This document shows, piece by piece, positions 1-55,050 of a stretch of 64,000 bases of DNA. The notes under the pieces were generated by a model that had not been told where the DNA came from, did not search any database, and saw nothing but the letters and a program-made list of their open reading frames with translations. The DNA is taken from NCBI GenBank assembly GCA_038496445.1, contig JALMLS010000354.1:62001-126000 (forward strand). Reading direction: 5' to 3'. Each line of letters starts with the position of its first letter. The first letter of the stretch is position 1. This stretch comes from Trichosphaerium sp. ATCC 40318. Its lineage: Eukaryota > Protista > Tubulinea. The position numbers and the translations under genes are program-made.

Positions 1-149
1 AACGGCACAACTTTTATCACATCACATACCTTTAACTTTGCTCATGCTGTGACTAACTTTTTGTTGAGCTAAGTGCAGAAAAACAAAAATTTGCGTTTGT
101 GAAAGCTGCTGACCATCAAAGTTATGCGATTAGCTCTGATGCCTGTGGT

Positions 150-2460
150 ATGAGTGTAGCTGCCAAATTGACTAGAAACACAGCTAAGCGTGCAACATGG
201 GCCAGTCAGATTAAAATCGACGCGTTTACACGAAAGGTTAGGCTTATATTGTACCCTACGCTTACAATTACGCTGTAGATAGAACGAAATTTAAAAATTA
301 AGCACATTGATGAATGGTACTCAAGAACAGCTCAAGACATTATCCAACACGGCGGAAAGACACTTTTAGAGTGCGTTAACGCACATTATAACTGAAATGT
401 TTACCAAATACAGCAAAAAAAATGGTTCTCTGCAACAATGCTTAGAGGCTATGTACCCAACTGTCAAGTGGCAGCAATGGGATTTCCGTGCGTCTTATCC
501 TGTATACAAGCTTTGGTTTTAACATCAGTAGATAAGAAACATGGTTTTTGGAATGAACGGACAGCTAAATCCTTCATTAGACACGTGCGCAAAAAAAAGT
601 TAAAAATTGAGCTAACGTTAATTTGTTGCAAATCTAGCTCAAAAAAAAGCTTAAAATAAAGAAGTTATCTGATTGGTACAATTGCAGTGCTAGGGATATA
701 CGAGACCACGGCGGTGGCGGGTTACTGCGTCACATGTACGCGATGATGACAAGACTCGGCTGTTGACACACTCGCTCTTCACTAGGTACAATGGTTCTCC
801 AATGATGATGTTTCAGAAACTCTATCCTGGATATGATTGGGAACCATGGAAGTTCCGCGCAGCACCTAGAGAGTACTGGAAAAATGAAGATCATTCACGC
901 GTTTTTTTGATTCATGTACGATTTAAGTACAGTGATGCACTTCACTTCCTCACTTGTATCATAGGTAGAAGAGAAGCTAAACATTAAATCTATAGAAGAT
1001 TGGTATAGTATAACGTACAATGATGTTACTAAATACGGTGGAACAGGAATACTTGCGTAAGTAGTGCAACATGCAGTGTCCGTTTGTATTAACAATCAAG
1101 AAGGTATTTCAATTGTTGTGTCGCTGATTTTTTAGTGCACATGTATCCAGATATTAAATGGGATGCTACAAAATTTAGTGCGCATTGTTGTTGCTAGTAA
1201 AAGTGCTAACTTTAAGAAAGATATTGTTAAACGAAATTACTGGGAGAGTTTGGAAAACCAACGGGAAGAAATTATAAATGCACGTGTCAACATAAAGTAC
1301 TATTTGTTAACATTCGTTGCTTAGGTTGAGAAACGGTTGAATATTTCTAAGCTTGATGATTGGTACGATGTCAGATGGTCTTCTTTGAAAAATGGGCTAC
1401 TGAAGTACGCTTTTTTGTCAAATTGAAAAAAAAGAAAGTTAAAAAAAAAGTTAGCCATCATTCAGCATCGCGATATAATTTATTGAAAACACATTACCCT
1501 GATCATCCATGGGACATATCTAAATTCAGGAAACATACAGGTTAAGACTGGTCTTATCAATCATTAGCTAATGTTGTTGTTGTAGCTTTGAAACCTGTCA
1601 AGTACTGGACGAAAAGTGAAAATGTCAAACCCTTTTTGAAGAGTCTAGAAGGTGTGCTTGGTATCAAATCACCACAAGATTGGTACCGAGTGTCAATTCG
1701 ACAACTTACACAGCTTAATGGAGGAGGTCTTAAACGCCACTGGCCTGGTGTGTTGAGTATGCTTTACCCTCAACTAAAATGGTCAAACACTCCCACAACA
1801 TGTGATGATAAACGATCGGCACAGAGGTAAGTCACTTCAACTTAGTGGCCGAGAACTAAACCATACTAAGATGGCTTATTGAATGTTTACACACGCTGTT
1901 TGATGGTGCAGAGATAATAGAAGAATATAAATTGGGCCTAGTTTCAGACAGTGCAAGAGGAGATTTGGTTATAGATGCTTTTATTCCTTCCGTTAAACTT
2001 GCAATGGAGTACCAAGGAGAGCAACATTACATAGATAACATGCACGCTTATGGGTTTTCTCGACTTCAAACCTCTAGAGATACAGAAAAGGTGGCCAAAT
2101 GCGATATTCTAGGTAGCTAAGAATTGTATTTTATACTGTCATGATTGTTTATACCACATTAGGTATTACATTGGTACCTATACCGTATTGGTGGGTACAA
2201 GGCGATATCCACGCAGTGGCAGCAACTATTCTACACTACAGGTACGAACAACTTTCAAGTACCGTCTTGACATTAGTAAAAGGCCAGACATTACATTTTC
2301 AATACCAACAAGCGGACGTCCTCTTCTCGCACCACCAAATGAGGACATGCATATAGGTGCGTTTTGACATTAAATTTGCAGTGCTTTTGATCACTTTTTT
2401 TTAACTGTTTTAGGGCATACAATGGCTCCCATTAGCGAGTATGTATGCGAAAGACGGTAG
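150..2460 (+). CDS. Tandem-repeat protein (5 x ~75-aa repeats) with C-terminal Vsr/DUF559/RAP-like PD-(D/E)XK nuclease domain; multi-exon, may start upstream of the window
   Basis: Spliced translation gives repeats such as LKIKKLSDWYNCSARDIRDHGGGGLLRHMYNGSPMMMFQKLYPGYDWEPWKF and LNIKSIEDWYSITYNDVTKYGGTGIL, then EEYK..VIDAFIPSVKLAMEYQGEQHY..RDTEK..GITLVPIPYWW. Stop TAG at 2458-2460. A branch-like ACTAAC at 52-57 suggests a further upstream exon. Confidence 0.8.
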
Positions 2461-5848: not shown

Positions 5849-8800
5849 TCATTCTGCGTTACATATTTGCTTCATTATTGGATTTCCGCTTGATTTTGCC
5901 TTTGTGGCAAGTGTTCTAATATATGCGAGCATCTCTGTGTTTGACATTTCAAGCAACTCTTTACTTTTGAAATCATTAAAAATGTTGTCTATTTCCATGT
6001 CAGCTTGTTGTATTACATCATCATCTTCGTTTTCAGCTTTATCTAAATAATAGCAGTACATAAGAACATTGTATATACAAAAATACGTACCATCAAAGTT
6101 TTCAAGCTGTGCTGCTTTAATCTGAGCCAAGTTTATCACTGAATCTGGAAAGTTCGCTAACCGTGCCACGTGAATACCAAAACTTTTATCTGATGGTCCT
6201 TTCTTTAGCTCATATAGCAACGTCAATCTGTCGCCATGAATCTGAATACACAAAAATAGTCAGAACCTGGTAAAATCAAAATATAAAATATAAAAAAGTT
6301 GTTTTTTTGTTCACCTTCGCATCAACATGTAGGTTCTTAATAGTAGGCTGCTCGTTTTGTAGGTGGGTGAGTTCGTGAAAATGTGTTGCGAACAAACATA
6401 GCCCTTGAATTTTGGTGATGATAAATCTAGACGACAAGCAAGTTATTCACTTAAAAAAAATCACGTTTGTTTAAAAGGTGCAAGTACTCTGAAATAGCCC
6501 AAGCTAAGCCAAACCCGTCATATGTGGATGTGCCCCTACCAAGCTCGTCTATAATTATCAACGAATTTTCAGTAGCTGCGCCAATAAGTGTTGCTGTTTC
6601 AAGCATTTCAGCCTATTCAAGTAAGTAAATCGTACAACTTGTCTTGAGCCTACCATAAAAGTGGAAACGCCTAATCGAGATTAGAACTTGGCGTGCTTAA
6701 AAAAGTACATAAGCGCCACATACCTCGTAGTTGGCTATCTCCTGCGCCAACACGTGCGAGTATCTTATCACAAATCTTGATAGAAGCGGATTCACAAGGG
6801 ACAAAGCATCCAATCTGTGCCATAAGCACAATCAACCCCACCTGTCGGATATACGTCGATTTACCACCCATGTTTGGTCCTGTGATGATGAGGAACGATG
6901 ATTCTCCTTTGTGACACAAATCGATTAGAAAGGTCAGCTGTAGCCTGGCATTGTACCTTTCTTCATGTGAACATCGTTTGGCATGAACACAATATCGGGT
7001 AACGTTTCAACAAGAGGGTGACGTGAAGCAACCAGTTTTATTTCCTCGTCATTAAAAGTAGGTCGACAATACGCCGTGCCAGCATTTGAGAAAACAAAAG
7101 CCAGACTAAACCATGTTAAAGCACGTGATTACTCCTGCTCAACGAGTAATATAAGTACCTTGTAAACACATCCAGACGTGCCATCGTATTGTAGCAACTC
7201 TCTAAGACAGGTACATATGTCTCTGTAGTAATCATTATTATTAGCAACAGTTTGTTTATAAAGGATCAATCGTACTTGCAGTGGCCAAAACACCCTCTGC
7301 GATGTAACTGGAAACATGAGAATAAGATGTATCATTTGCTTCTAATTTACGGTTCAAAGAACTCAACTTTCCGTCTGTGAATCTCACAATACTGCGAGAG
7401 TAGTTTCCTGACAGTACTTTGTAATCCTTTTTACCGCTCAAGCACTTTGAATCCTAAAAACCAATTTAACAGACTGAAGTTTCTTGAAATGTTGCACCTT
7501 CTTAGATACTTGGAAGTGGTAACCAATAGCACTGTTGTGAATCTATGAGTAATTAGATTTCTATACAGGTGCAAGAAGTGGTTAAGTACCATTTTGAAGG
7601 ATTTGGCTGTCGACAGAGCGAACCCTACTTGGGACTCGCGTTCTTTCATTTTTTGCAATAAAGCATCTTTAACCGAAGCTAATTTTTCAAGTTGTTTATC
7701 AAAAGCTGGGAGTATTCTAATGTCCCTTTGTTCTAGTGAAGCCAAGTCGATAGCCTGCTCTACAAGCTCTTCGAATTTGCTTAAATCTGCACGTGCACTC
7801 TATATCAAGAAAATGAATAAAAACACATTAGGCTATCATACACATTAGTAAGTTACCTTTAGTGGTTTAATAAATGACTGCTTGACAATGGTCATGAATT
7901 TATCTTCTCCATCGTAACGTTCTAGTTCTTGTACTATCGAATCTATCTTTCTAGAGAACTGGTAGACTACCACAAGATCCTAACAGCAAAACATGAGACA
8001 AGGAACCTGCAAACACCCCAACCGTACATATAATTTGCCTTTATCTCTTTTCAGTCTGTTGACAATGCGTTCCAAGTCAGGCACACGACGTAACTGTTGT
8101 GTCCGTAACTCTGTAGTGAGTGCCATGTCTGTATAGAATAATTCTACAGTATCTAGCCTTTCTTCTATCGCTACTTTATTGACAAGAGGCTGCTTTATCC
8201 ACTGGGATAGCCTTCGAGAACCCATTGCTGTTCGACAAGCGTTTAATAGATAGAATAGATTGTTTTTAGAATTTCCTGTAACAACTTTTAGCAACAGGAG
8301 CAGGAATCGTCCTCTCACCTTGTTTGGGATCCATGAACAGATCAAGTGCAGTTGATGCAGCTGGATCCAATCTCATGTACTGAACGAGATCATACGTTTC
8401 AAGCGAGAAAGATCCTCTGTTTTCATCATCTGCTAGTAACTACGAAGGTATTTAGCGAAGCCTATCATGATAAGATGTACGTCTAGACCACTTATCAAGC
8501 ACGCCAACGCAGCCATTGCTGTAGGTTCTTTCAAGATATCTAAATAGCTTACGTCAATACTCACAAGCTTGTTGGAGGTGCTGTATACCTATTGCTTGGT
8601 ACTTGTTTCCTAATAAATTCGTCAAATCCTGCTCTGTGTTGTTGGTATTGAATTTATTATTTCCAACTGGTGCTGTAGTAACCTGACACCGCTCAAGGAT
8701 TTCCTATGTACTAAATAAACAACGTGGTGTATTTGTTTGTTGTCACATACGTAAAGCTTGCAAATATCTGGATCACTTTCTGTAGCTTCCTGTAGTAGAC

Positions 8801-15267: not shown

Positions 15268-15450
15268 AGCTACTACTAGTTCTAACGTTAATAGAATGAT
15301 GCTATTATTCGAAAAAGTATGAAATTTACCAGGTAATTCGCGAGATTTACTAAAATGGCATGTTGATCGCGTGCCATACTTGCCACTTTTTTAGATTGTT
15401 GTTTGGTCTTAGTTCTCTGAATTAGGGTAATGACTTCTTCACACTATTCC

Positions 15451-16881
15451 TTACTGCGTGCGCTTGGCAAATACGTGTCTAACTTGTTGTAATATACCCC
15501 TTTTGTTGCAGTCATAAGAAGTGAGTTTAAAGGCGCGTGGTACCTTTGAGTTGATCGTTTATATTTAGAGTTGAATCTGTGCCACTCCCATTCAAATTCA
15601 GGATAGAAGATGCCCAGCAGTTTTGGATAGTAAGGGAGTAACCCTGATCCACCAGATTTTGCAAGCTGCGTGTTTGTAATGTTGTACCTAAGGTGAAATT
15701 GTAATTAAATTAAAAGTGCTCACAAAACAGTTCATTACCATTGTGTAGGGTGAGTAATATTCATACGACTCTCCGTTGACAGAATAAAAGACAAGATATT
15801 GTCCGGTTCACACCAAAACCCTTTAGGAACAAGCCGAGACTGAGTGCTAGCGACCGTTAATAATGACATTGATGTCGTTTAAATATAGCATACTGAAACT
15901 TGACATTCTGCCAGGCAAACCTAGGATATAGGGACTGCAGTGTAGTTTTTAAAGACCATTTATGCCTAAAATTAAATGACCTACCAGAAACAGTAAAAAT
16001 AGCTAGTTACCTGGACAAAATCGGAGCACCTCCTGCATCCATCACTTGGCGCACAGTGGCGTTCGGCCAGTCCTCTAGGCAGTTGATTCCTAGTGAGTGT
16101 GCTATATCTTCAAACTTTGCAAGTTGTATTTGTACGCTCTTAAACCTTCGCTTGTGTCTAGAACACGTGAGTCCTAAACACCTCTTGGTAACGTACTTAA
16201 ACTTGCTCCATTGCCAGCCATTATAGTGAGGATATATGCAACGTAATGCCTCTGGCAGGGATCGTCCATATCTGTTTGTAGATCCTTAGTAGCCAGAACG
16301 AGCTTGGCTATTCTGAACAACGTACTTGTGAAGCAAACCACCTAGACCTACAGGCTCAACTTGTTCGACTGATATTGACACCCAATCATCAAGCGTTTTA
16401 ATCTCAAGTTTCTTACCAGCTTCATTGAACCTTTGTAGCTGTTTTTCAAGCGTATTCCATATCACCGAATTGCTACAGATGCTCAGCTGTCATATTTTGT
16501 TTTTTGGTGCGTTTTACCTCACTCTCATAGAATCCCAGGTGTGTTGGGGGTATACCAGTGATAGTGTGCGCTGAAGGGATTGTTTATACAGGTTTCTGCA
16601 GTCAATAAGCGTTTATACCAGCAAAAACCTTACAATTTAGGCCTCTTGTTAGGCACAGACTGTTTTACTTGGTCGCATGTCTTCTCTATCCAATCATCAA
16701 ACTGATAGACGCGTAGTTTAGCCGCAACTATTTCCATCACGTCCCTTCGGTACTTGTCGTTTGTCCATGTCGCATTTGGTACCTTTTCTGATGAAACAAG
16801 GCGAGAACCTTTTGACAGCCCAACTTTAGTTTTCAGGCGTATAAAATGAGTACTAGTACCTAGGCTGTTGTAACGGCTCAT
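15451..16881 (-). CDS. Paralogous tandem-repeat protein (4 x ~75-aa repeats) lacking the nuclease domain; possible mitochondrial presequence
   Basis: MSRYNSLGTSTHFIRLKTK... then KLRVYQFDDW, KLEIKTLDDWVSISVEQVEPVGLGGLLHKYGRSLPEALRCIYP, LGINCLEDW..AGGAPIL, MNITHPTQWYNIT..SGGSGLL..FYPEFEW. Ends shortly after KRSTQR; an alternative short last exon to about 15349 is possible. Confidence 0.75.
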
Positions 16882-17017
16882 GACATTGGGTTGCTTTAAG
16901 CCATGGGTAAGTTGATTTAAGTTTCGCCAGTTTGTAAGTGTCAAACACGTTAAGCGAACGAAAAGTTGGCGAATTCTCTCTTCTTACATTCTAGTTAAAT
17001 ACACCAACTAACGCATC

Positions 17018-28584: not shown

Positions 28585-29081
28585 TTACTCTGAAGGGCCT
28601 TCAATACCCTTTTCCTTCATGAATTTGGCGACCTCAGCGTTTTTTTCCATGTTGGCGAGGATGTCGTAACCTCCAACAAATTCTCCCTTGACGTAAAGTT
28701 GTGGGATGGTAGGCCATTCGCTACAAGGCATCAGGACCAAGAAAAATGTGAAAGGGCGTACGAGAACTCCTTTATGCCTTGTCGAATTTGCATGTCGTCT
28801 AACACGTTGTAGCTCGCATAATTGCTAATACCTACGCGGCGTAAGCGATTAGAGCGCGTTTTCGAAGTTATTGTACCGTTCTTTTGTAATATTTGGACAA
28901 CGCCTTGAGAAAAGCCGCATTGAGGTGCATTTGGTGTTCCTTTCATATACAATACGACATCATTGTCATTAACTTGTTTTTTGATGCGCTCTTGGACCTG
29001 TAGTGTCTGGCACCACCTTCTTTGGCTCTGTGGCTTTACAGAGGCGTAGGATCTTTGAATACGGGTTGAGAAGCGCAACAT
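28585..29081 (-). CDS. GLRX5: Mitochondrial monothiol glutaredoxin (Grx5)
   Basis: Presequence MLRFSTRIQRSY; VVLYMKGTPNAPQCGFS; RQGIKEFS|EWPTIPQLYVKGEFVGG. Confidence 0.93.
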
Positions 29082-46191: not shown

Positions 46192-47778
46192 ATGGCCGAC
46201 CAACAAACCAAAAAACGCAAGTTTCAAGGCACTATATATCATATCAACTCGTAACGTTTCATGTTTGCTTACCTATGTTTTAGCAAGCGGATTCAACCCA
46301 CCCTGCGCTGCTCCAGTTAGTTTCCGTAAAGAACTGATCGCTACTGCTGTACGCCATCTACTCACGCGTGTTTAGACATTAAGACCTTGTAGAGAGCCAT
46401 TGCTACTCCTGGACGCGGTATCCTTGCAGCTGATGAGTCAACTGGAACCATCGGCAAGCGTTTGGCTGCCATTTCACTTGAGAATACCGAGGAGAACAGA
46501 CGTGCTTACAGAGAGTTGTTGTTCCGCACTGAGGGTACGTTTATGCGTGACTTTGGTGATCTTACAATACCACCCCCAGGCTTGAACAAATACATCTCTG
46601 GTGCCATCATGTACGAGGAGACTCTATTCCAAAAAGCCGCAGATGGCACTCCAATCGTTGATTTGTGTAAGGCTCAAGGTATTGTACCTGGCATTAAAAC
46701 TGACTTGGTACGTTGGGAGAAGATTAAAAAAAAAACGGTATAACTAATATCTGCTGTTTAGGGATTGCGCGCCATCCCTGGCACTGACGAAATGGTACGT
46801 GACAGTTTATAGGCAAAACAGCCAGGTTTCTTAAAGCAAACTCATTTTTAATTTTTTTTCTACAGGTAACTCAAGGCCTCACAGACCTCGACAAGCGTAG
46901 CGCCAAATACTACAAACAAGGTGCCAGATTCTGCAAGGTACCGTGCTTTTTGACTTGAGTCGACAAGCTAAAAAAAGTTTGTGTGCTCACCGTTTTTTTT
47001 TTACAGTGGCGTGCTGTTTACAAGATCTCTGATACGACACCATCCCCAGCTGCTATCAAATTGCAGGCTGACAGTCTCGCTCGTTACGCTGCAATCTCTC
47101 AAGCCAATGGACTTGTGCCTATTGTAGAACCAGAGGTACTTTTTATATCATCATATCTACCAAGTTTTTTTTTCGTCTATTGAAATTGGTGCTAATTGAC
47201 CTTGGTAGGTTCTCATGGACGGCCCTCATTCCATTGAAAAATGTGCTGCTGTATCAGAGAAAGTATACGCTGCTGTATTCAAGGCTTTGAGCGACAACCA
47301 CGTCATGTTGGAGGGTATCTTGTTGAAGCCTAACATGATCACATCTGGTTCTGATGCTAAAGACAAAGCTGACCCTCAAACTGTTGCGTCATACACACTC
47401 CGCACCCTTCAACGCACAGTTCCACCAGCTGTACCAGGCATTAACTTTTTATCTGGTGGCCAAACTGAGGAAATGGCAACAGTACACCTAAACGCCATCA
47501 ACCAACTCAAAGGTGCCAAACCATGGAGAGTCTCGTTTTCTTTTGGTCGCGCCCTTCAAGCATCTGCAATTCAAGCTTGGAAAGGTAAAAAAGAGAATGT
47601 TGCTGCTGCACAAGCTACTTTGTTGAAGCGAGCAAAAGCTAATGGTGAAGCTGAGCTTGGCAAATATGGTATGAAATTTCTAAAATCAAATTGCCTGTTT
47701 TGACTCTGTTTTATAGGTGGAGATGCTGCTGATCCAGATGCACAAGTTTCCTTGTTTGAAAAGGATTATTATTATTAA
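46192..47778 (+). CDS. ALDO: Fructose-bisphosphate aldolase class I
   Basis: [58 protein letters not shown]; C-terminal Tyr. Confidence 0.96.
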
Positions 47779-52914: not shown

Positions 52915-55050
52915 TTTTTTTTTTTTTATAAAAAGGTGGGTTTATTGTGCTGTGGACGACAATAACCACGCGTGCTGTTTATTACATATTATATTTTCAT
53001 AGTTCAAAATAAAGATCTTCATCCCATTCTTCTGAGCTTTCATCATCTGAATAATAGTTGTGTCTTTGCCTACTTGACCTACATATAGGTGGGGTTAGTA
53101 ATTTTAACTGTTTGTTGATATAAGTGTTTTTGGAGCTGGTAAGTGGTAAAGGGGGTGGAGGTAAACCAGCACCCCAGTCCTCCCATGTATCTTTAAAATC
53201 TGCCATCCAATTAGTAGATTTCCAGTAGCGGCCAACTTGTGTAAGCTTATCTTTATCAGTGGCCTATTAATTCCCCTAAGAGAGCTGACAGACTTCAACA
53301 TCTTGTGGACTTTCCATCTTTATCCCTCATTGCCTGCAATGTGGGGGCCATTTGACTTCAGAAGCTTTGGGTGTGTTGTGTTTGACAATGTCAGACACTT
53401 TAGCATACCTTTGAGTTGGAGGTATTTTGACATTTTTTGCTAATTTGAGCCATTGGGTAAAACATTCATTGCCTATATTAGAAAGTTTAGATTCCCACAA
53501 GTCAGAGTATAAGGTAATAACTCTAGTATGCCTGGACCATAAAGAAGCTTTGAAATTGTTGGCTATGGTAGATATATCCAGGACAGATAAACCACCCAAG
53601 TGGAATGGCAAACAAGTTCTAGCTCTTAAAGAAGATCGATAAGTATGAGTGCTATTGTACACTTTGGCCACATTATTCATACTGTCATAATATCCATAAA
53701 ACAAAAACCAATTGACTATGTTCCTCCATTGCTTATCAATGTAGGGAGGTATAGTCAATGGCCTAGAAAAGTATATTATTTGTGATTGGGCATAGGTTCT
53801 GAGTATTGCATGCTTGGATTTAAGAGTTTTGGCATAGAGTTTCCAAGAATATAAGGATTTGGTAATGTTGGCTAATGCCTTATGAAAATCAAAAGTTAAG
53901 GTGTTGCTAGGAGATAAAGTGAAGCCTAGGTATTTGGTAGCTGGGGAAGAAGAAAGTGCCTGCTTCAAGTGACCAACAACATTGATTTGAAAACACTTGG
54001 ACTTGTTCAAGAATAGACCAGATGCTGCAGAAAATTTGTTGATCATATCTAGGCACAAAGTAATATCTGAGGATGATGATGCTGTAATAAGTGCATTGTC
54101 TGCAAATAGAATTTGTTTAAGCAATAAAAAAACAGCTTTGGCTCCATTAACATTATTGCTTTGGTTAATCATGCAGTTGAGAGGTTCTAACATGATGGCA
54201 AAAAGAGTGGGAGAAAATGGGTTATCTTGGCCTGTGCCTCTTTCAACTTTAAAAGTTTTGTTGGAGACAACACCATTGATCCTAACTGCTACTTGAATTT
54301 GTAGCTGGGTAACAATGGCTTGAGCTATTATTCTTGGAACTCCAATGTGCATGAGAACAAGTATTAGTACATTGTGAGCACAACTATCAAAAGCTTTTTT
54401 GTTATCTAATGGGCATAAAGAGAGAGGTGTGCCTTATTTTTGGTGTGATTCTACAATTTCTAACGTAGCAATTTGGTTGTCCACAATATCTCGACCTGGA
54501 ATAAAACCGTTTTGGTTAGAGCTGATAATGTTGGGTAGAAACTTAAGTAGCCTGTTGTTGATGACCTTCATAAATATTTTATAGTCGTTATTGAGCAGGA
54601 CTATGGGTCTATAATTGTCCAACAAGCTGGGATCACCTTTTTTGTAGAGAGGGCAAATAACCCCTCTACCAAACCAATCGTGGACATTACCTTCTATGAT
54701 ATCATTGAAAAGAGGACACATATGTCTGGCAATAGATAGACCTAAATCTTTGTAGAGACATACCTACTCCGTCTGGGCCAGGTGCTTTGTTGGATGGCAT
54801 AAACTTAATGGCTGTGAGAATTTCCGAAATAGTAATGGCACCAAACATATCTGTGGAAATTTAATCTTTGCAATACACTTTCCAATAACCCAGTCACTCC
54901 TCCATAGCGTCTTCATCACCTGACCAAAGAGCATACAAATTTTTTTTGTAATAAAGTAGTCCTTTGTTGAGCATACCTGAAAGCCTAGCATCCTTGGGGT
55001 GATCGACAGAGCGTCTCAGTTCCTTAATCTGTTGTGATGCCTGCTTACCC
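52915..55050 (-). mobile_element. Degenerate, 5'-truncated non-LTR retrotransposon (L1/Tx1-like) ORF2 reverse transcriptase
   Basis: PGPDG, YRPIVLLNNDYKI, QNGFIPGR, LDNKKAFDS, RGTGQDNPFSPTLF, FADN (mutated xADD), KYLG. Frameshifted and intronless. AATAAA plus poly(A) at the 3' end (T-run 52915-52927 on +). Confidence 0.9.

Follow-up and report, generated by a model that had tools for sequence, protein, structure and literature searches.

Proteins that join a helical-repeat array to a nuclease-like domain, such as PPR-SMR, OPR-RAP and FASTK proteins, run much of organellar gene expression and have inspired programmable nucleases, while Vsr is an enzyme that nicks DNA in a mismatch-directed manner. 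The closest described systems to the gene presented here are the FASTK/RAP proteins (human FASTKD1-5, plant and algal RAP and OPR-RAP proteins, apicomplexan HPR-RAP proteins) and the EDxHD homing endonucleases, typified by I-Bth0305I, together with the Vsr/DUF559/DUF2726 clade. A helical array with a Vsr-like domain is thus a design already known from the former, and a Vsr-like domain with other binding modules is known from the latter. The gene lies at positions 150-2460 (+) of a 64,000-nucleotide (nt) stretch of Trichosphaerium sp. ATCC 40318 (contig JALMLS010000354.1, positions 62,001 to 126,000; hereafter the window). It is a member of a large uncharacterised family in which repeats of DUF4046 type, a unit catalogued only as a domain of unknown function (DUF), are followed by a Vsr-type nuclease. 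Our best explanation, which we hold to be slightly better than an even bet, is that the protein would be an array-guided Vsr-type endonuclease, probably mitochondrial.

Joining three forward frames by hand gives a 541-amino-acid (aa) open reading frame (ORF) without internal stop, from the ATG at 150 to the TAG at 2458-2460, and these limits are identical to those of a preliminary description, which had proposed a tandem-repeat array plus nuclease at this place. The predicted gene has 16 exons and 15 introns, all GT-AG and 35-57 nt long (mean 46), and its product has an isoelectric point (pI) of about 9.3. Five repeats and the nuclease were recovered by hidden Markov models (HMMs) built from foreign homologues only (alignment A1, 132 proteins), and the resulting features are as follows.

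150-236, 279-370, 414-487, 529-584, 638-735, 786-915, 965-1056, 1101-1177 (+): exons 1-8 of the splice model
1221-1285, 1325-1404, 1455-1540, 1586-1826, 1871-2112, 2163-2241, 2277-2356, 2414-2460 (+): exons 9-16 of the splice model
186-486 (+): repeat 1 (aa 13-84), family repeat HMM E 3.4e-21; introns 237-278 (phase 0) and 371-413 (phase 2)
534-858 (+): repeat 2 (aa 87-160), family repeat HMM E 4.2e-27; introns 585-637 (phase 0) and 736-785 (phase 2)
862-1222 (+): repeat 3 (aa 162-236), family repeat HMM E 1.2e-25; introns 916-964 (phase 0), 1057-1100 (phase 2) and, at its end, 1178-1220 (phase 1)
1226-1530 (+): repeat 4 (aa 238-309), family repeat HMM E 1.2e-19; introns 1286-1324 (phase 0) and 1405-1454 (phase 2); GG motif degenerate, KNGLL
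1591-1785 (+): repeat 5 (aa 315-379), family repeat HMM E 9.6e-19; the sole single-exon repeat (exon 1586-1826)
1807-2230 (+): Vsr/DUF559/DUF2726-type PD-(D/E)XK nuclease domain (aa 387-496), family nuclease HMM E 7.8e-33; introns 1827-1870 and 2113-2162
1920-1925 (+): upstream helix glutamates E410/E411, preceding the candidate active site
1974-1976, 2007-2009, 2025-2027, 2079-2081, 2088-2090 (+): candidate active-site codons D428, E439, H445, D463 and K466, respectively, at conserved alignment columns
2231-2460 (+): C-terminal tail of ~45 aa with no recognisable domain; the model is least secure in the last two exons, which encode it

The window is eukaryotic DNA of about 38-44% G+C, with short ORFs distributed over the frames, and its letters indicate that 150-2460 is a real nuclear gene of an intron-rich protist. 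A skeptic might instead see a pseudogene or a wrong gene model, since the splice sites were predicted from sequence and the exons of the tail are not secure, the frame being preserved with an acceptor at 2382 as well. We find that objection scarcely credible, however, because 541 codons are stop-free over 16 exons, the splice sites are all canonical and the family-conserved residues are all kept. A GC-AG intron at 1180-1216, present in the first splice model, was dropped in favor of the canonical GT-AG intron 1178-1220 (GTGCGC...AG), which preserves the frame equally well. Within repeats 1-4 the introns fall at three recurring spots, namely midway through helix 1 (phase 0), behind the GGxxLL motif (phase 2) and behind the closing W..F (phase 1); the last of these is missing between repeats 2 and 3. 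Since introns recur at the same repeat positions, the array would have grown via internal duplication within an intron-bearing eukaryotic gene. Intron 4 is flanked by a 21-nt A-rich direct repeat (587-607 and 637-657, +; 86% identical), of which copy 1 spans the donor and copy 2 the acceptor, and the LKKKLKI that starts exon 5 is echoed as RKKKLKI just within the intron. The pair could be left over from the duplication behind the repeats, or it could give rise to alternative splicing. An upstream ORF at 124-153 (+) encodes MRLALMPVV and ends in a TGA that overlaps the proposed start codon as ATGA.

The window repeats are Trp-rich units of ~73 aa with 25-36% pairwise identity. The family consensus, PxxxWxxxxNxRxFxxxLxxxLxIxxxxDWYxVxxxxIxxxGGxxLLxxYxxSxxxxLxxxYPExxWxxxxF, was derived from 139 repeats and agrees with the skeleton given in the preliminary description except that the spacing from W to L.I is about 17 residues rather than 12-13. 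In AlphaFold models the unit is predicted to be a five-helix module of one long and four short helices; the model of the repeat 5 exon, computed with 138 foreign repeats as input, has five helices at a predicted local distance difference test score (pLDDT) of 83.9. The repeat had been described as being neither PPR, OPR nor TPR, and we concur: the unit matched no Pfam repeat family, a Pfam scan of the window exon translations, which are short for such a scan, returned no family at E<=1, and a ~73-aa five-helix unit excludes the 34-40-aa helix-turn-helix units of PPR, OPR, HPR and TPR proteins.

Is each repeat read out by a code of its own, as the preliminary description had it? That idea found no backing, as the 139-repeat consensus contains no hypervariable pair resembling a repeat-variable diresidue and no two-residue code; the residues that vary are simply those on the surface of every helix of a divergent repeat, and N12, R14 and R34 are among its polar or basic positions with partial conservation. 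The protein shares with TALE, PPR and PUF readers and with PPR-SMR proteins the concept of tandem helical modules, sometimes tethered to a nuclease, but its modules are twice as long and have neither a hypervariable specificity pair nor a known code. TALE-like repeat nucleases are built from near-identical 33-35-aa repeats with two specificity residues, whereas identity among the window repeats is low and variability extends across all surface positions, which places the protein outside that group.

Among solved structures in the Protein Data Bank (PDB), the single-repeat model found no significant relative with Foldseek or VIA-align. Foldseek gave one match, a SAM domain at E 7, and VIA-align scored no higher than Z 4.2, placing SAM domains and further small helical domains that bind DNA at around Z 3. 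The resemblance is both SAM-like and helix-hairpin-helix-like, with the GG hairpin lying between two short helices, and we treat it as a lead only.

Predicted structures provided closer relatives. In the AlphaFold-DB clusters the closest match was 'RAP domain-containing protein (Fragment)', with 33% identity and E 6e-26, and 'DUF4046 domain-containing' proteins matched at E 7.5e-8 over about 300 residues. Other matches were the uncharacterised A0A6C0ETA5, Planctomycetes proteins, the dictyostelid proteins Q54JM7, F4PGV2 and D3B0J8, and a 'DUF559 domain-containing protein' aligned across both repeats and nuclease. The ESM Atlas returned clusters from Tubulinea, Planctomycetota, Nucleocytoviricota and Bacillota DUF4046 proteins, with template-modelling (TM) scores of 0.60-0.69 for one repeat and feature scores of 0.83-0.91. 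By predicted structure, bacterial DUF4046 proteins (PF13255; mainly Bacillota) and Planctomycetota proteins thus have the same repeat fold (Atlas TM 0.63 for one repeat, feature score 0.83), and the likeness to DUF4046 clusters in structure and features is clear. The bacterial DUF4046 proteins differ in that identity is only 14-22% and most are listed without a nuclease. Many homologues bear precomputed PF13255.12 tags, although the Pfam copy used here gave no PF13255 match, at E up to 10, even to homologues that bear the tag. The preliminary description had suggested a likeness to Firmicute DUF4046 repeats and to unannotated amoebozoan proteins, which the structure and feature searches and these tags substantiate. 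It had also called the system undescribed; a literature search found no paper on the family and none mentioning DUF4046, but the unit is catalogued under that name, and a close homologue already has the RAP auto-name in UniProt.

The C-terminal domain had been taken for a Vsr/RAP-like PD-(D/E)XK fold, and modelling of a homologue agrees with that assignment. The fold was read from an AlphaFold2 model of P0122, computed with alignment A1 (pLDDT 93.9, predicted TM score 0.80); P0122 is a homologue with four repeats and a nuclease, and is 34% identical to the window protein over aa 85-499. Its C-terminal 110 residues run helix, three strands, helix, strand, helix, an alpha-beta-beta-beta-alpha-beta core. 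A search of 48,161 PDB chains, independent of Foldseek, placed every top match on this domain, over 86-101 residues for I-Bth0305I, Vsr and NGO0050; the P0122 nuclease domain matched the following.

I-Bth0305I catalytic domain (3r3p), Z 10.3
Toxoplasma mitoribosome chain, presumably RAP-type, Z 9.7
Vsr-DNA complex (1cw0), Z 9.6
NGO0050 (3hrl), Z 9.1
RAP module of FASTKD4, Z 8.8

Foldseek was concordant on the nuclease, both in the PDB and among Swiss-Prot models (V.NaeI, V.XorIIP, HI_0925). The homologue model superposes on the core common to Vsr, I-Bth0305I and NGO0050, and the window domain matches the same family HMM. The window exons themselves matched none of the Pfam models PF10881, PF04480 and PF03852. 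Of the Pfam families, DUF2726 is nearest at the sequence level, with matches in 13 of 17 homologue nuclease domains, mostly below cut-off; P0056 exceeds the DUF2726 cut-off (29.6 bits against 24.7) and P0092 that of DUF559 (21.5 bits against 20.6). Sequence-profile searches of the PDB with the whole family and with the nuclease domain gave no relevant relative. Steczkiewicz et al. 2012 (PMC3424549) group Vsr, DUF559 and DUF2726 in one clade with 1cw0, 3hrl and 3r3p, and list RAP apart.

The candidate residues named in the preliminary description, E(EYK) at 410/411, D(VIDAF) at 428, E(EYQG) at 439 and H(QHY) at 445, are all present. Among 132 homologues the columns of D428, E439 and H445 are 98% conserved, that of D463 100% and that of K466 95%, against a family mean column identity of 24%. 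As described in PMC3239194, the composite Vsr/EDxHD site combines a Glu from a helix with an Asp that binds metal, a His serving as general base and a further Asp. By order and spacing, the conserved positions of the window protein, with E410/E411 in the preceding helix, would be the counterpart of Vsr E25/D51/H69/D97 in that description.

This conservation bears on the idea that the protein is a non-catalytic scaffold, in which SAM-like modules would contact other proteins or the ribosome and the nuclease fold would survive as a structural relic. Such a role would fit the weak SAM likeness (Pfam SAM_TNK scored under its cut-off, and the SAM domains of p63 and Eph reached Z about 2.9), the incorporation of RAP proteins in the Toxoplasma mitoribosome and the inactive Vsr-like site of FASTKD4 (PMC11879112). 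However, the five putative catalytic positions stand at 95-100% conservation in an otherwise divergent family, the arrays are basic and every SAM match is far from significance, so that we regard a scaffold as very improbable.

A more serious alternative hypothesis is that the protein is an organellar RNA factor like RAP/FASTK, OPR-RAP and HPR-RAP proteins, whose array binds a mitochondrial transcript while the Vsr-like domain either cleaves it, as reported for FASTKD5, or just holds the RNA. FASTK/RAP proteins and the window family share an N-terminal helical region with a C-terminal Vsr-like PD-(D/E)XK domain, and both form multi-paralogue families; targeting is organellar in the former and suspected in the latter. 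The RAP domain of FASTKD4 and the presumed RAP domain of a Toxoplasma mitoribosome protein superpose on the P0122 nuclease at Z 8.8-9.7. Whole-chain Foldseek ranked Toxoplasma mitoribosome large-subunit chains first (E 7e-3 to 7e-2), followed by FASTKD3/4 and plant RAP proteins (E 0.02-0.2), although the TM of these whole-chain matches is only about 0.2. The auto-name of the closest AlphaFold-DB cluster also speaks for RAP, as do presequence-like N-termini in many homologues and the abundance of paralogues with varying repeat number and nuclease-less members, as in PPR, OPR and HPR families. Moreover, a RAP survey found RAP undetectable in Amoebozoa and Excavata (PMC8190603), where the DUF4046-type family occurs.

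Several points set the family apart from RAP proteins or argue against this hypothesis. The Pfam RAP profile (PF08373) matched 1 of the 17 nuclease domains, at E 0.19, which leaves them outside the profile and the UniProt auto-name of the 33%-identical representative unreproduced, in contrast to the 13 of 17 that matched DUF2726. The window unit is a 73-aa five-helix module rather than FAST_1/FAST_2 or 37-40-aa helix pairs, and the full Vsr-type catalytic set appears to be conserved in the window family, whereas the Vsr-like domain of FASTKD4, with a partly kept site, is catalytically inert; for FASTKD5, nuclease activity has been reported (PMC11879112). Those relatives of the nuclease that sequence can detect carry DNA-binding homing-endonuclease modules, the ligase found in some members belongs to a DNA-ligase family, and the identical architecture occurs in bacteria. 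On this balance an organellar RNA factor is possible, but we consider it unlikely.

How widespread is the family? A search of 1.84 billion representative proteins with repeat 5 (single exon, 1588-1827) as the query yielded at least 2,212 cluster representatives at E<=1e-3 and 47 at E<=1e-30, with 4-20 matching stretches each, and most of the best 150 matches also match the C-terminal 156 residues of the window protein. Members have 3-25 repeats (median 6), and some have no nuclease. Hosts are Amoebozoa, Heterolobosea, metagenomes and a few bacteria; the named eukaryotic sources are Physarum polycephalum and Cavostelium apophysatum (both Amoebozoa) and Heterolobosea sp. BB2, and one metagenomic homologue, whose 883-kb contig also holds kinase and transporter genes in split form, is probably from a protist. 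The window exons are at most about 40% identical to any of 267 homologues. An HMM of the repeat and a count of architectures had been proposed earlier as a check, and in addition to these figures they yielded a second, nuclease-less paralogue within the window itself:

15447-16983 (-): second paralogue with about four to five repeats, found by family repeat HMMs in seven exon-like segments, E down to 1e-13

The nuclease HMM gave no match at or beside this paralogue, whose exons again break after the GGxxLL motif.

Two bacterial genes, one from 'Bacterium UASB270' (L015:5347-6408) and one from a deltaproteobacterial metagenome-assembled genome (MAG; L016:1792-3525), encode the same repeats-plus-nuclease architecture (repeat HMM E 1e-22 to 1e-28, nuclease HMM E 1e-36 to 1e-39). 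They differ from the window gene in being intronless, solitary genes, with three or about six repeats. Their neighborhoods hold signalling, transport and otherwise unrelated genes, with no conserved operon or defence context and one Schlafen/AlbA_2 neighbor only. In a Candidatus Kuenenia MAG (L017) the nuclease lies at the contig end.

The nuclease subfamily extends further than the repeat array. Prokaryotes and giant-virus MAGs encode this nuclease (identity 33-50% across the matched segment) in fusion with arrays of other small DNA-binding modules: NUMOD1/I-HmuI-like modules, or DUF4379 treble-clef zinc fingers with a CapR homology domain (loci L019, L021 and L022, which are Acutalibacteraceae MAGs, and L023, L033, L035, L043, L007 and L010), in bacteria, DPANN archaea and giant-virus MAGs. 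NUMOD1 modules are also present in I-Bth0305I. A search of IMG/VR with P0122 gave no relative, and a search with the nuclease alignment gave nuclease-only relatives, with the repeat array in none of those loci.

Such relatives raise the question of whether the protein is a domesticated or still selfish nuclease of homing-endonuclease or defence type, of prokaryotic or viral origin, acting on nuclear, viral or foreign DNA with no organellar role. The homing endonuclease I-Bth0305I is the best structural match, the viral structure matches include a phage 'homing endonuclease', a 'group I intron protein' and a giant-virus 'restriction endonuclease', the nuclease subfamily is common in giant-virus MAGs and prokaryotes, and the known hosts are amoeboid protists. 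The resemblance to EDxHD homing endonucleases includes the composite E...D...(E)...H...D conservation and a bipartite plan, with a nucleic-acid-binding N-terminal part (a role that the window array would have to share) and a C-terminal Vsr-like cutter. However, the window gene is free-standing, eukaryotic and nuclear rather than intron- or intein-encoded, and its N-terminal part is a DUF4046 array without NUMOD match in place of NUMOD or helix-turn-helix modules, which sets it apart from that group. Its 15 spliceosomal introns lie at recurring repeat positions and therefore point to expansion inside a eukaryotic genome, the viral matches are restricted to the nuclease domain, bacterial copies sit amid unrelated housekeeping genes and presequence-like N-termini are common in the family. 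For these reasons we judge a selfish or defensive nuclease to be improbable.

The composition of the two parts is consistent with an array that binds and a domain that cuts. Repeat arrays are basic and nuclease domains are not (family median pI 8.96 versus 6.32), and in the window protein four of the five repeats have a pI of 9.4-10.2 and the C-terminal part 5.4. Some members carry in addition an ATP-dependent DNA ligase domain, which follows the nuclease above the Pfam cut-off in P0083 and P0106 and is detected by phmmer in P0038, P0117, P0029, P0227 and P0157; in the Physarum transcript P0208 the end of a ligase domain precedes the repeats. An RNA substrate is what the analogy with PPR, OPR and FASTK proteins would imply, but the modules to which the nuclease is fused elsewhere speak for DNA at least as strongly. 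DNA is favored as the substrate because of what the nuclease resembles in sequence and matches best in structure, and because some members have a ligase and others are bacterial; RNA is favored because of the overall RAP/FASTK likeness, the paralogue expansion with nuclease-less members and the presequences. In rough terms we lean toward DNA at about an even chance, hold RNA to be appreciably less probable and rate any other substrate as unlikely.

The case for mitochondria comes from the N-termini. At least 20 aa lie ahead of the first repeat in 20 of 29 complete EukProt homologues, and these segments resemble mitochondrial presequences in composition, being poor in acidic residues (5.7% versus 12.4%), rich in Arg (10.4% versus 6.4%) and Ser/Thr-rich. 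On this compositional ground, eukaryotic members probably act in mitochondria. The N-terminus of the window protein reads MSVAAKLTRNTAKRA and has no acidic residue among its first 23 residues.

We hypothesize that the array-guided endonuclease would work in a few steps. The basic array of five five-helix modules would bind a particular nucleic-acid site and hold the C-terminal Vsr/EDxHD-type, metal-dependent endonuclease against it, and the endonuclease, to judge from its modelled fold and conserved residues, would nick or cut the bound site. Nuclease-less paralogues would act purely as binders, and ligase-bearing relatives would reseal the cut.

A number of points weigh against this proposal. 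Binding, cleavage, localization and substrate are all things that we infer; gene model and splice sites are predictions from the DNA letters; and the nuclease structure is modelled on a 34%-identical homologue rather than on the window protein, with the equivalence to Vsr residues drawn from order and spacing rather than from residue-level superposition. The modelled repeat fold, being without a significant solved relative, lends the nucleic-acid-binding role no support, and by analogy with FASTKD4 (PMC11879112) a Vsr-like domain of this kind may be inert. The window protein has only about 12 residues ahead of its first repeat, and the bacterial members show that the architecture is not bound to organelles.

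The boldest version of the array-guided endonuclease, which we consider quite unlikely, is that DUF4046 modules would be new modular nucleic-acid readers, and that arrays of 3-25 of them would programme a Vsr-type nuclease, in some members with a DNA ligase, to sites in the mitochondrial genome or its transcripts. A further speculation is that the family could be the missing endonuclease of mitochondrial tRNA 5'-editing, removing mismatched 5' nucleotides before repair by a Thg1-like polymerase. The family is a candidate because Vsr is a mismatch-directed nicking enzyme and because the family occurs in Amoebozoa, where such editing is documented. The editing nuclease has been stated to be unknown, with a mismatch-recognising endonuclease as one proposal (PMC4284800).

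Elsewhere in the window, a 341-aa ORF at 53327-54352 (-) has a reverse-transcriptase domain (RVT_1, E 1e-10) and is probably a fragment of a non-LTR retroelement. Three further features were recognised by eye: an exon at 47215-47703 (+) resembling the C-terminal half of class I fructose-bisphosphate aldolase, an ORF at 28731-29081 (-) that resembles monothiol glutaredoxin and has a basic N-terminus, and MutS-like exons at 5849-8345 (-).

What is new at this locus is a different, unstudied repeat unit joined to a Vsr-type cutter whose predicted active site looks catalytically complete, in a family of thousands of sequences. Part of that family resides in Amoebozoa and Heterolobosea, lineages in which classical RAP is reported to be undetectable, and the DNA ligase of some members suggests a cut-and-reseal chemistry. 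If the modules bind in a modular and predictable fashion, they would offer a new natural scaffold for site-specific nucleases, and even without modular binding the family would be a strong candidate to supply missing activities in the processing or repair of nucleic acids in protist mitochondria.

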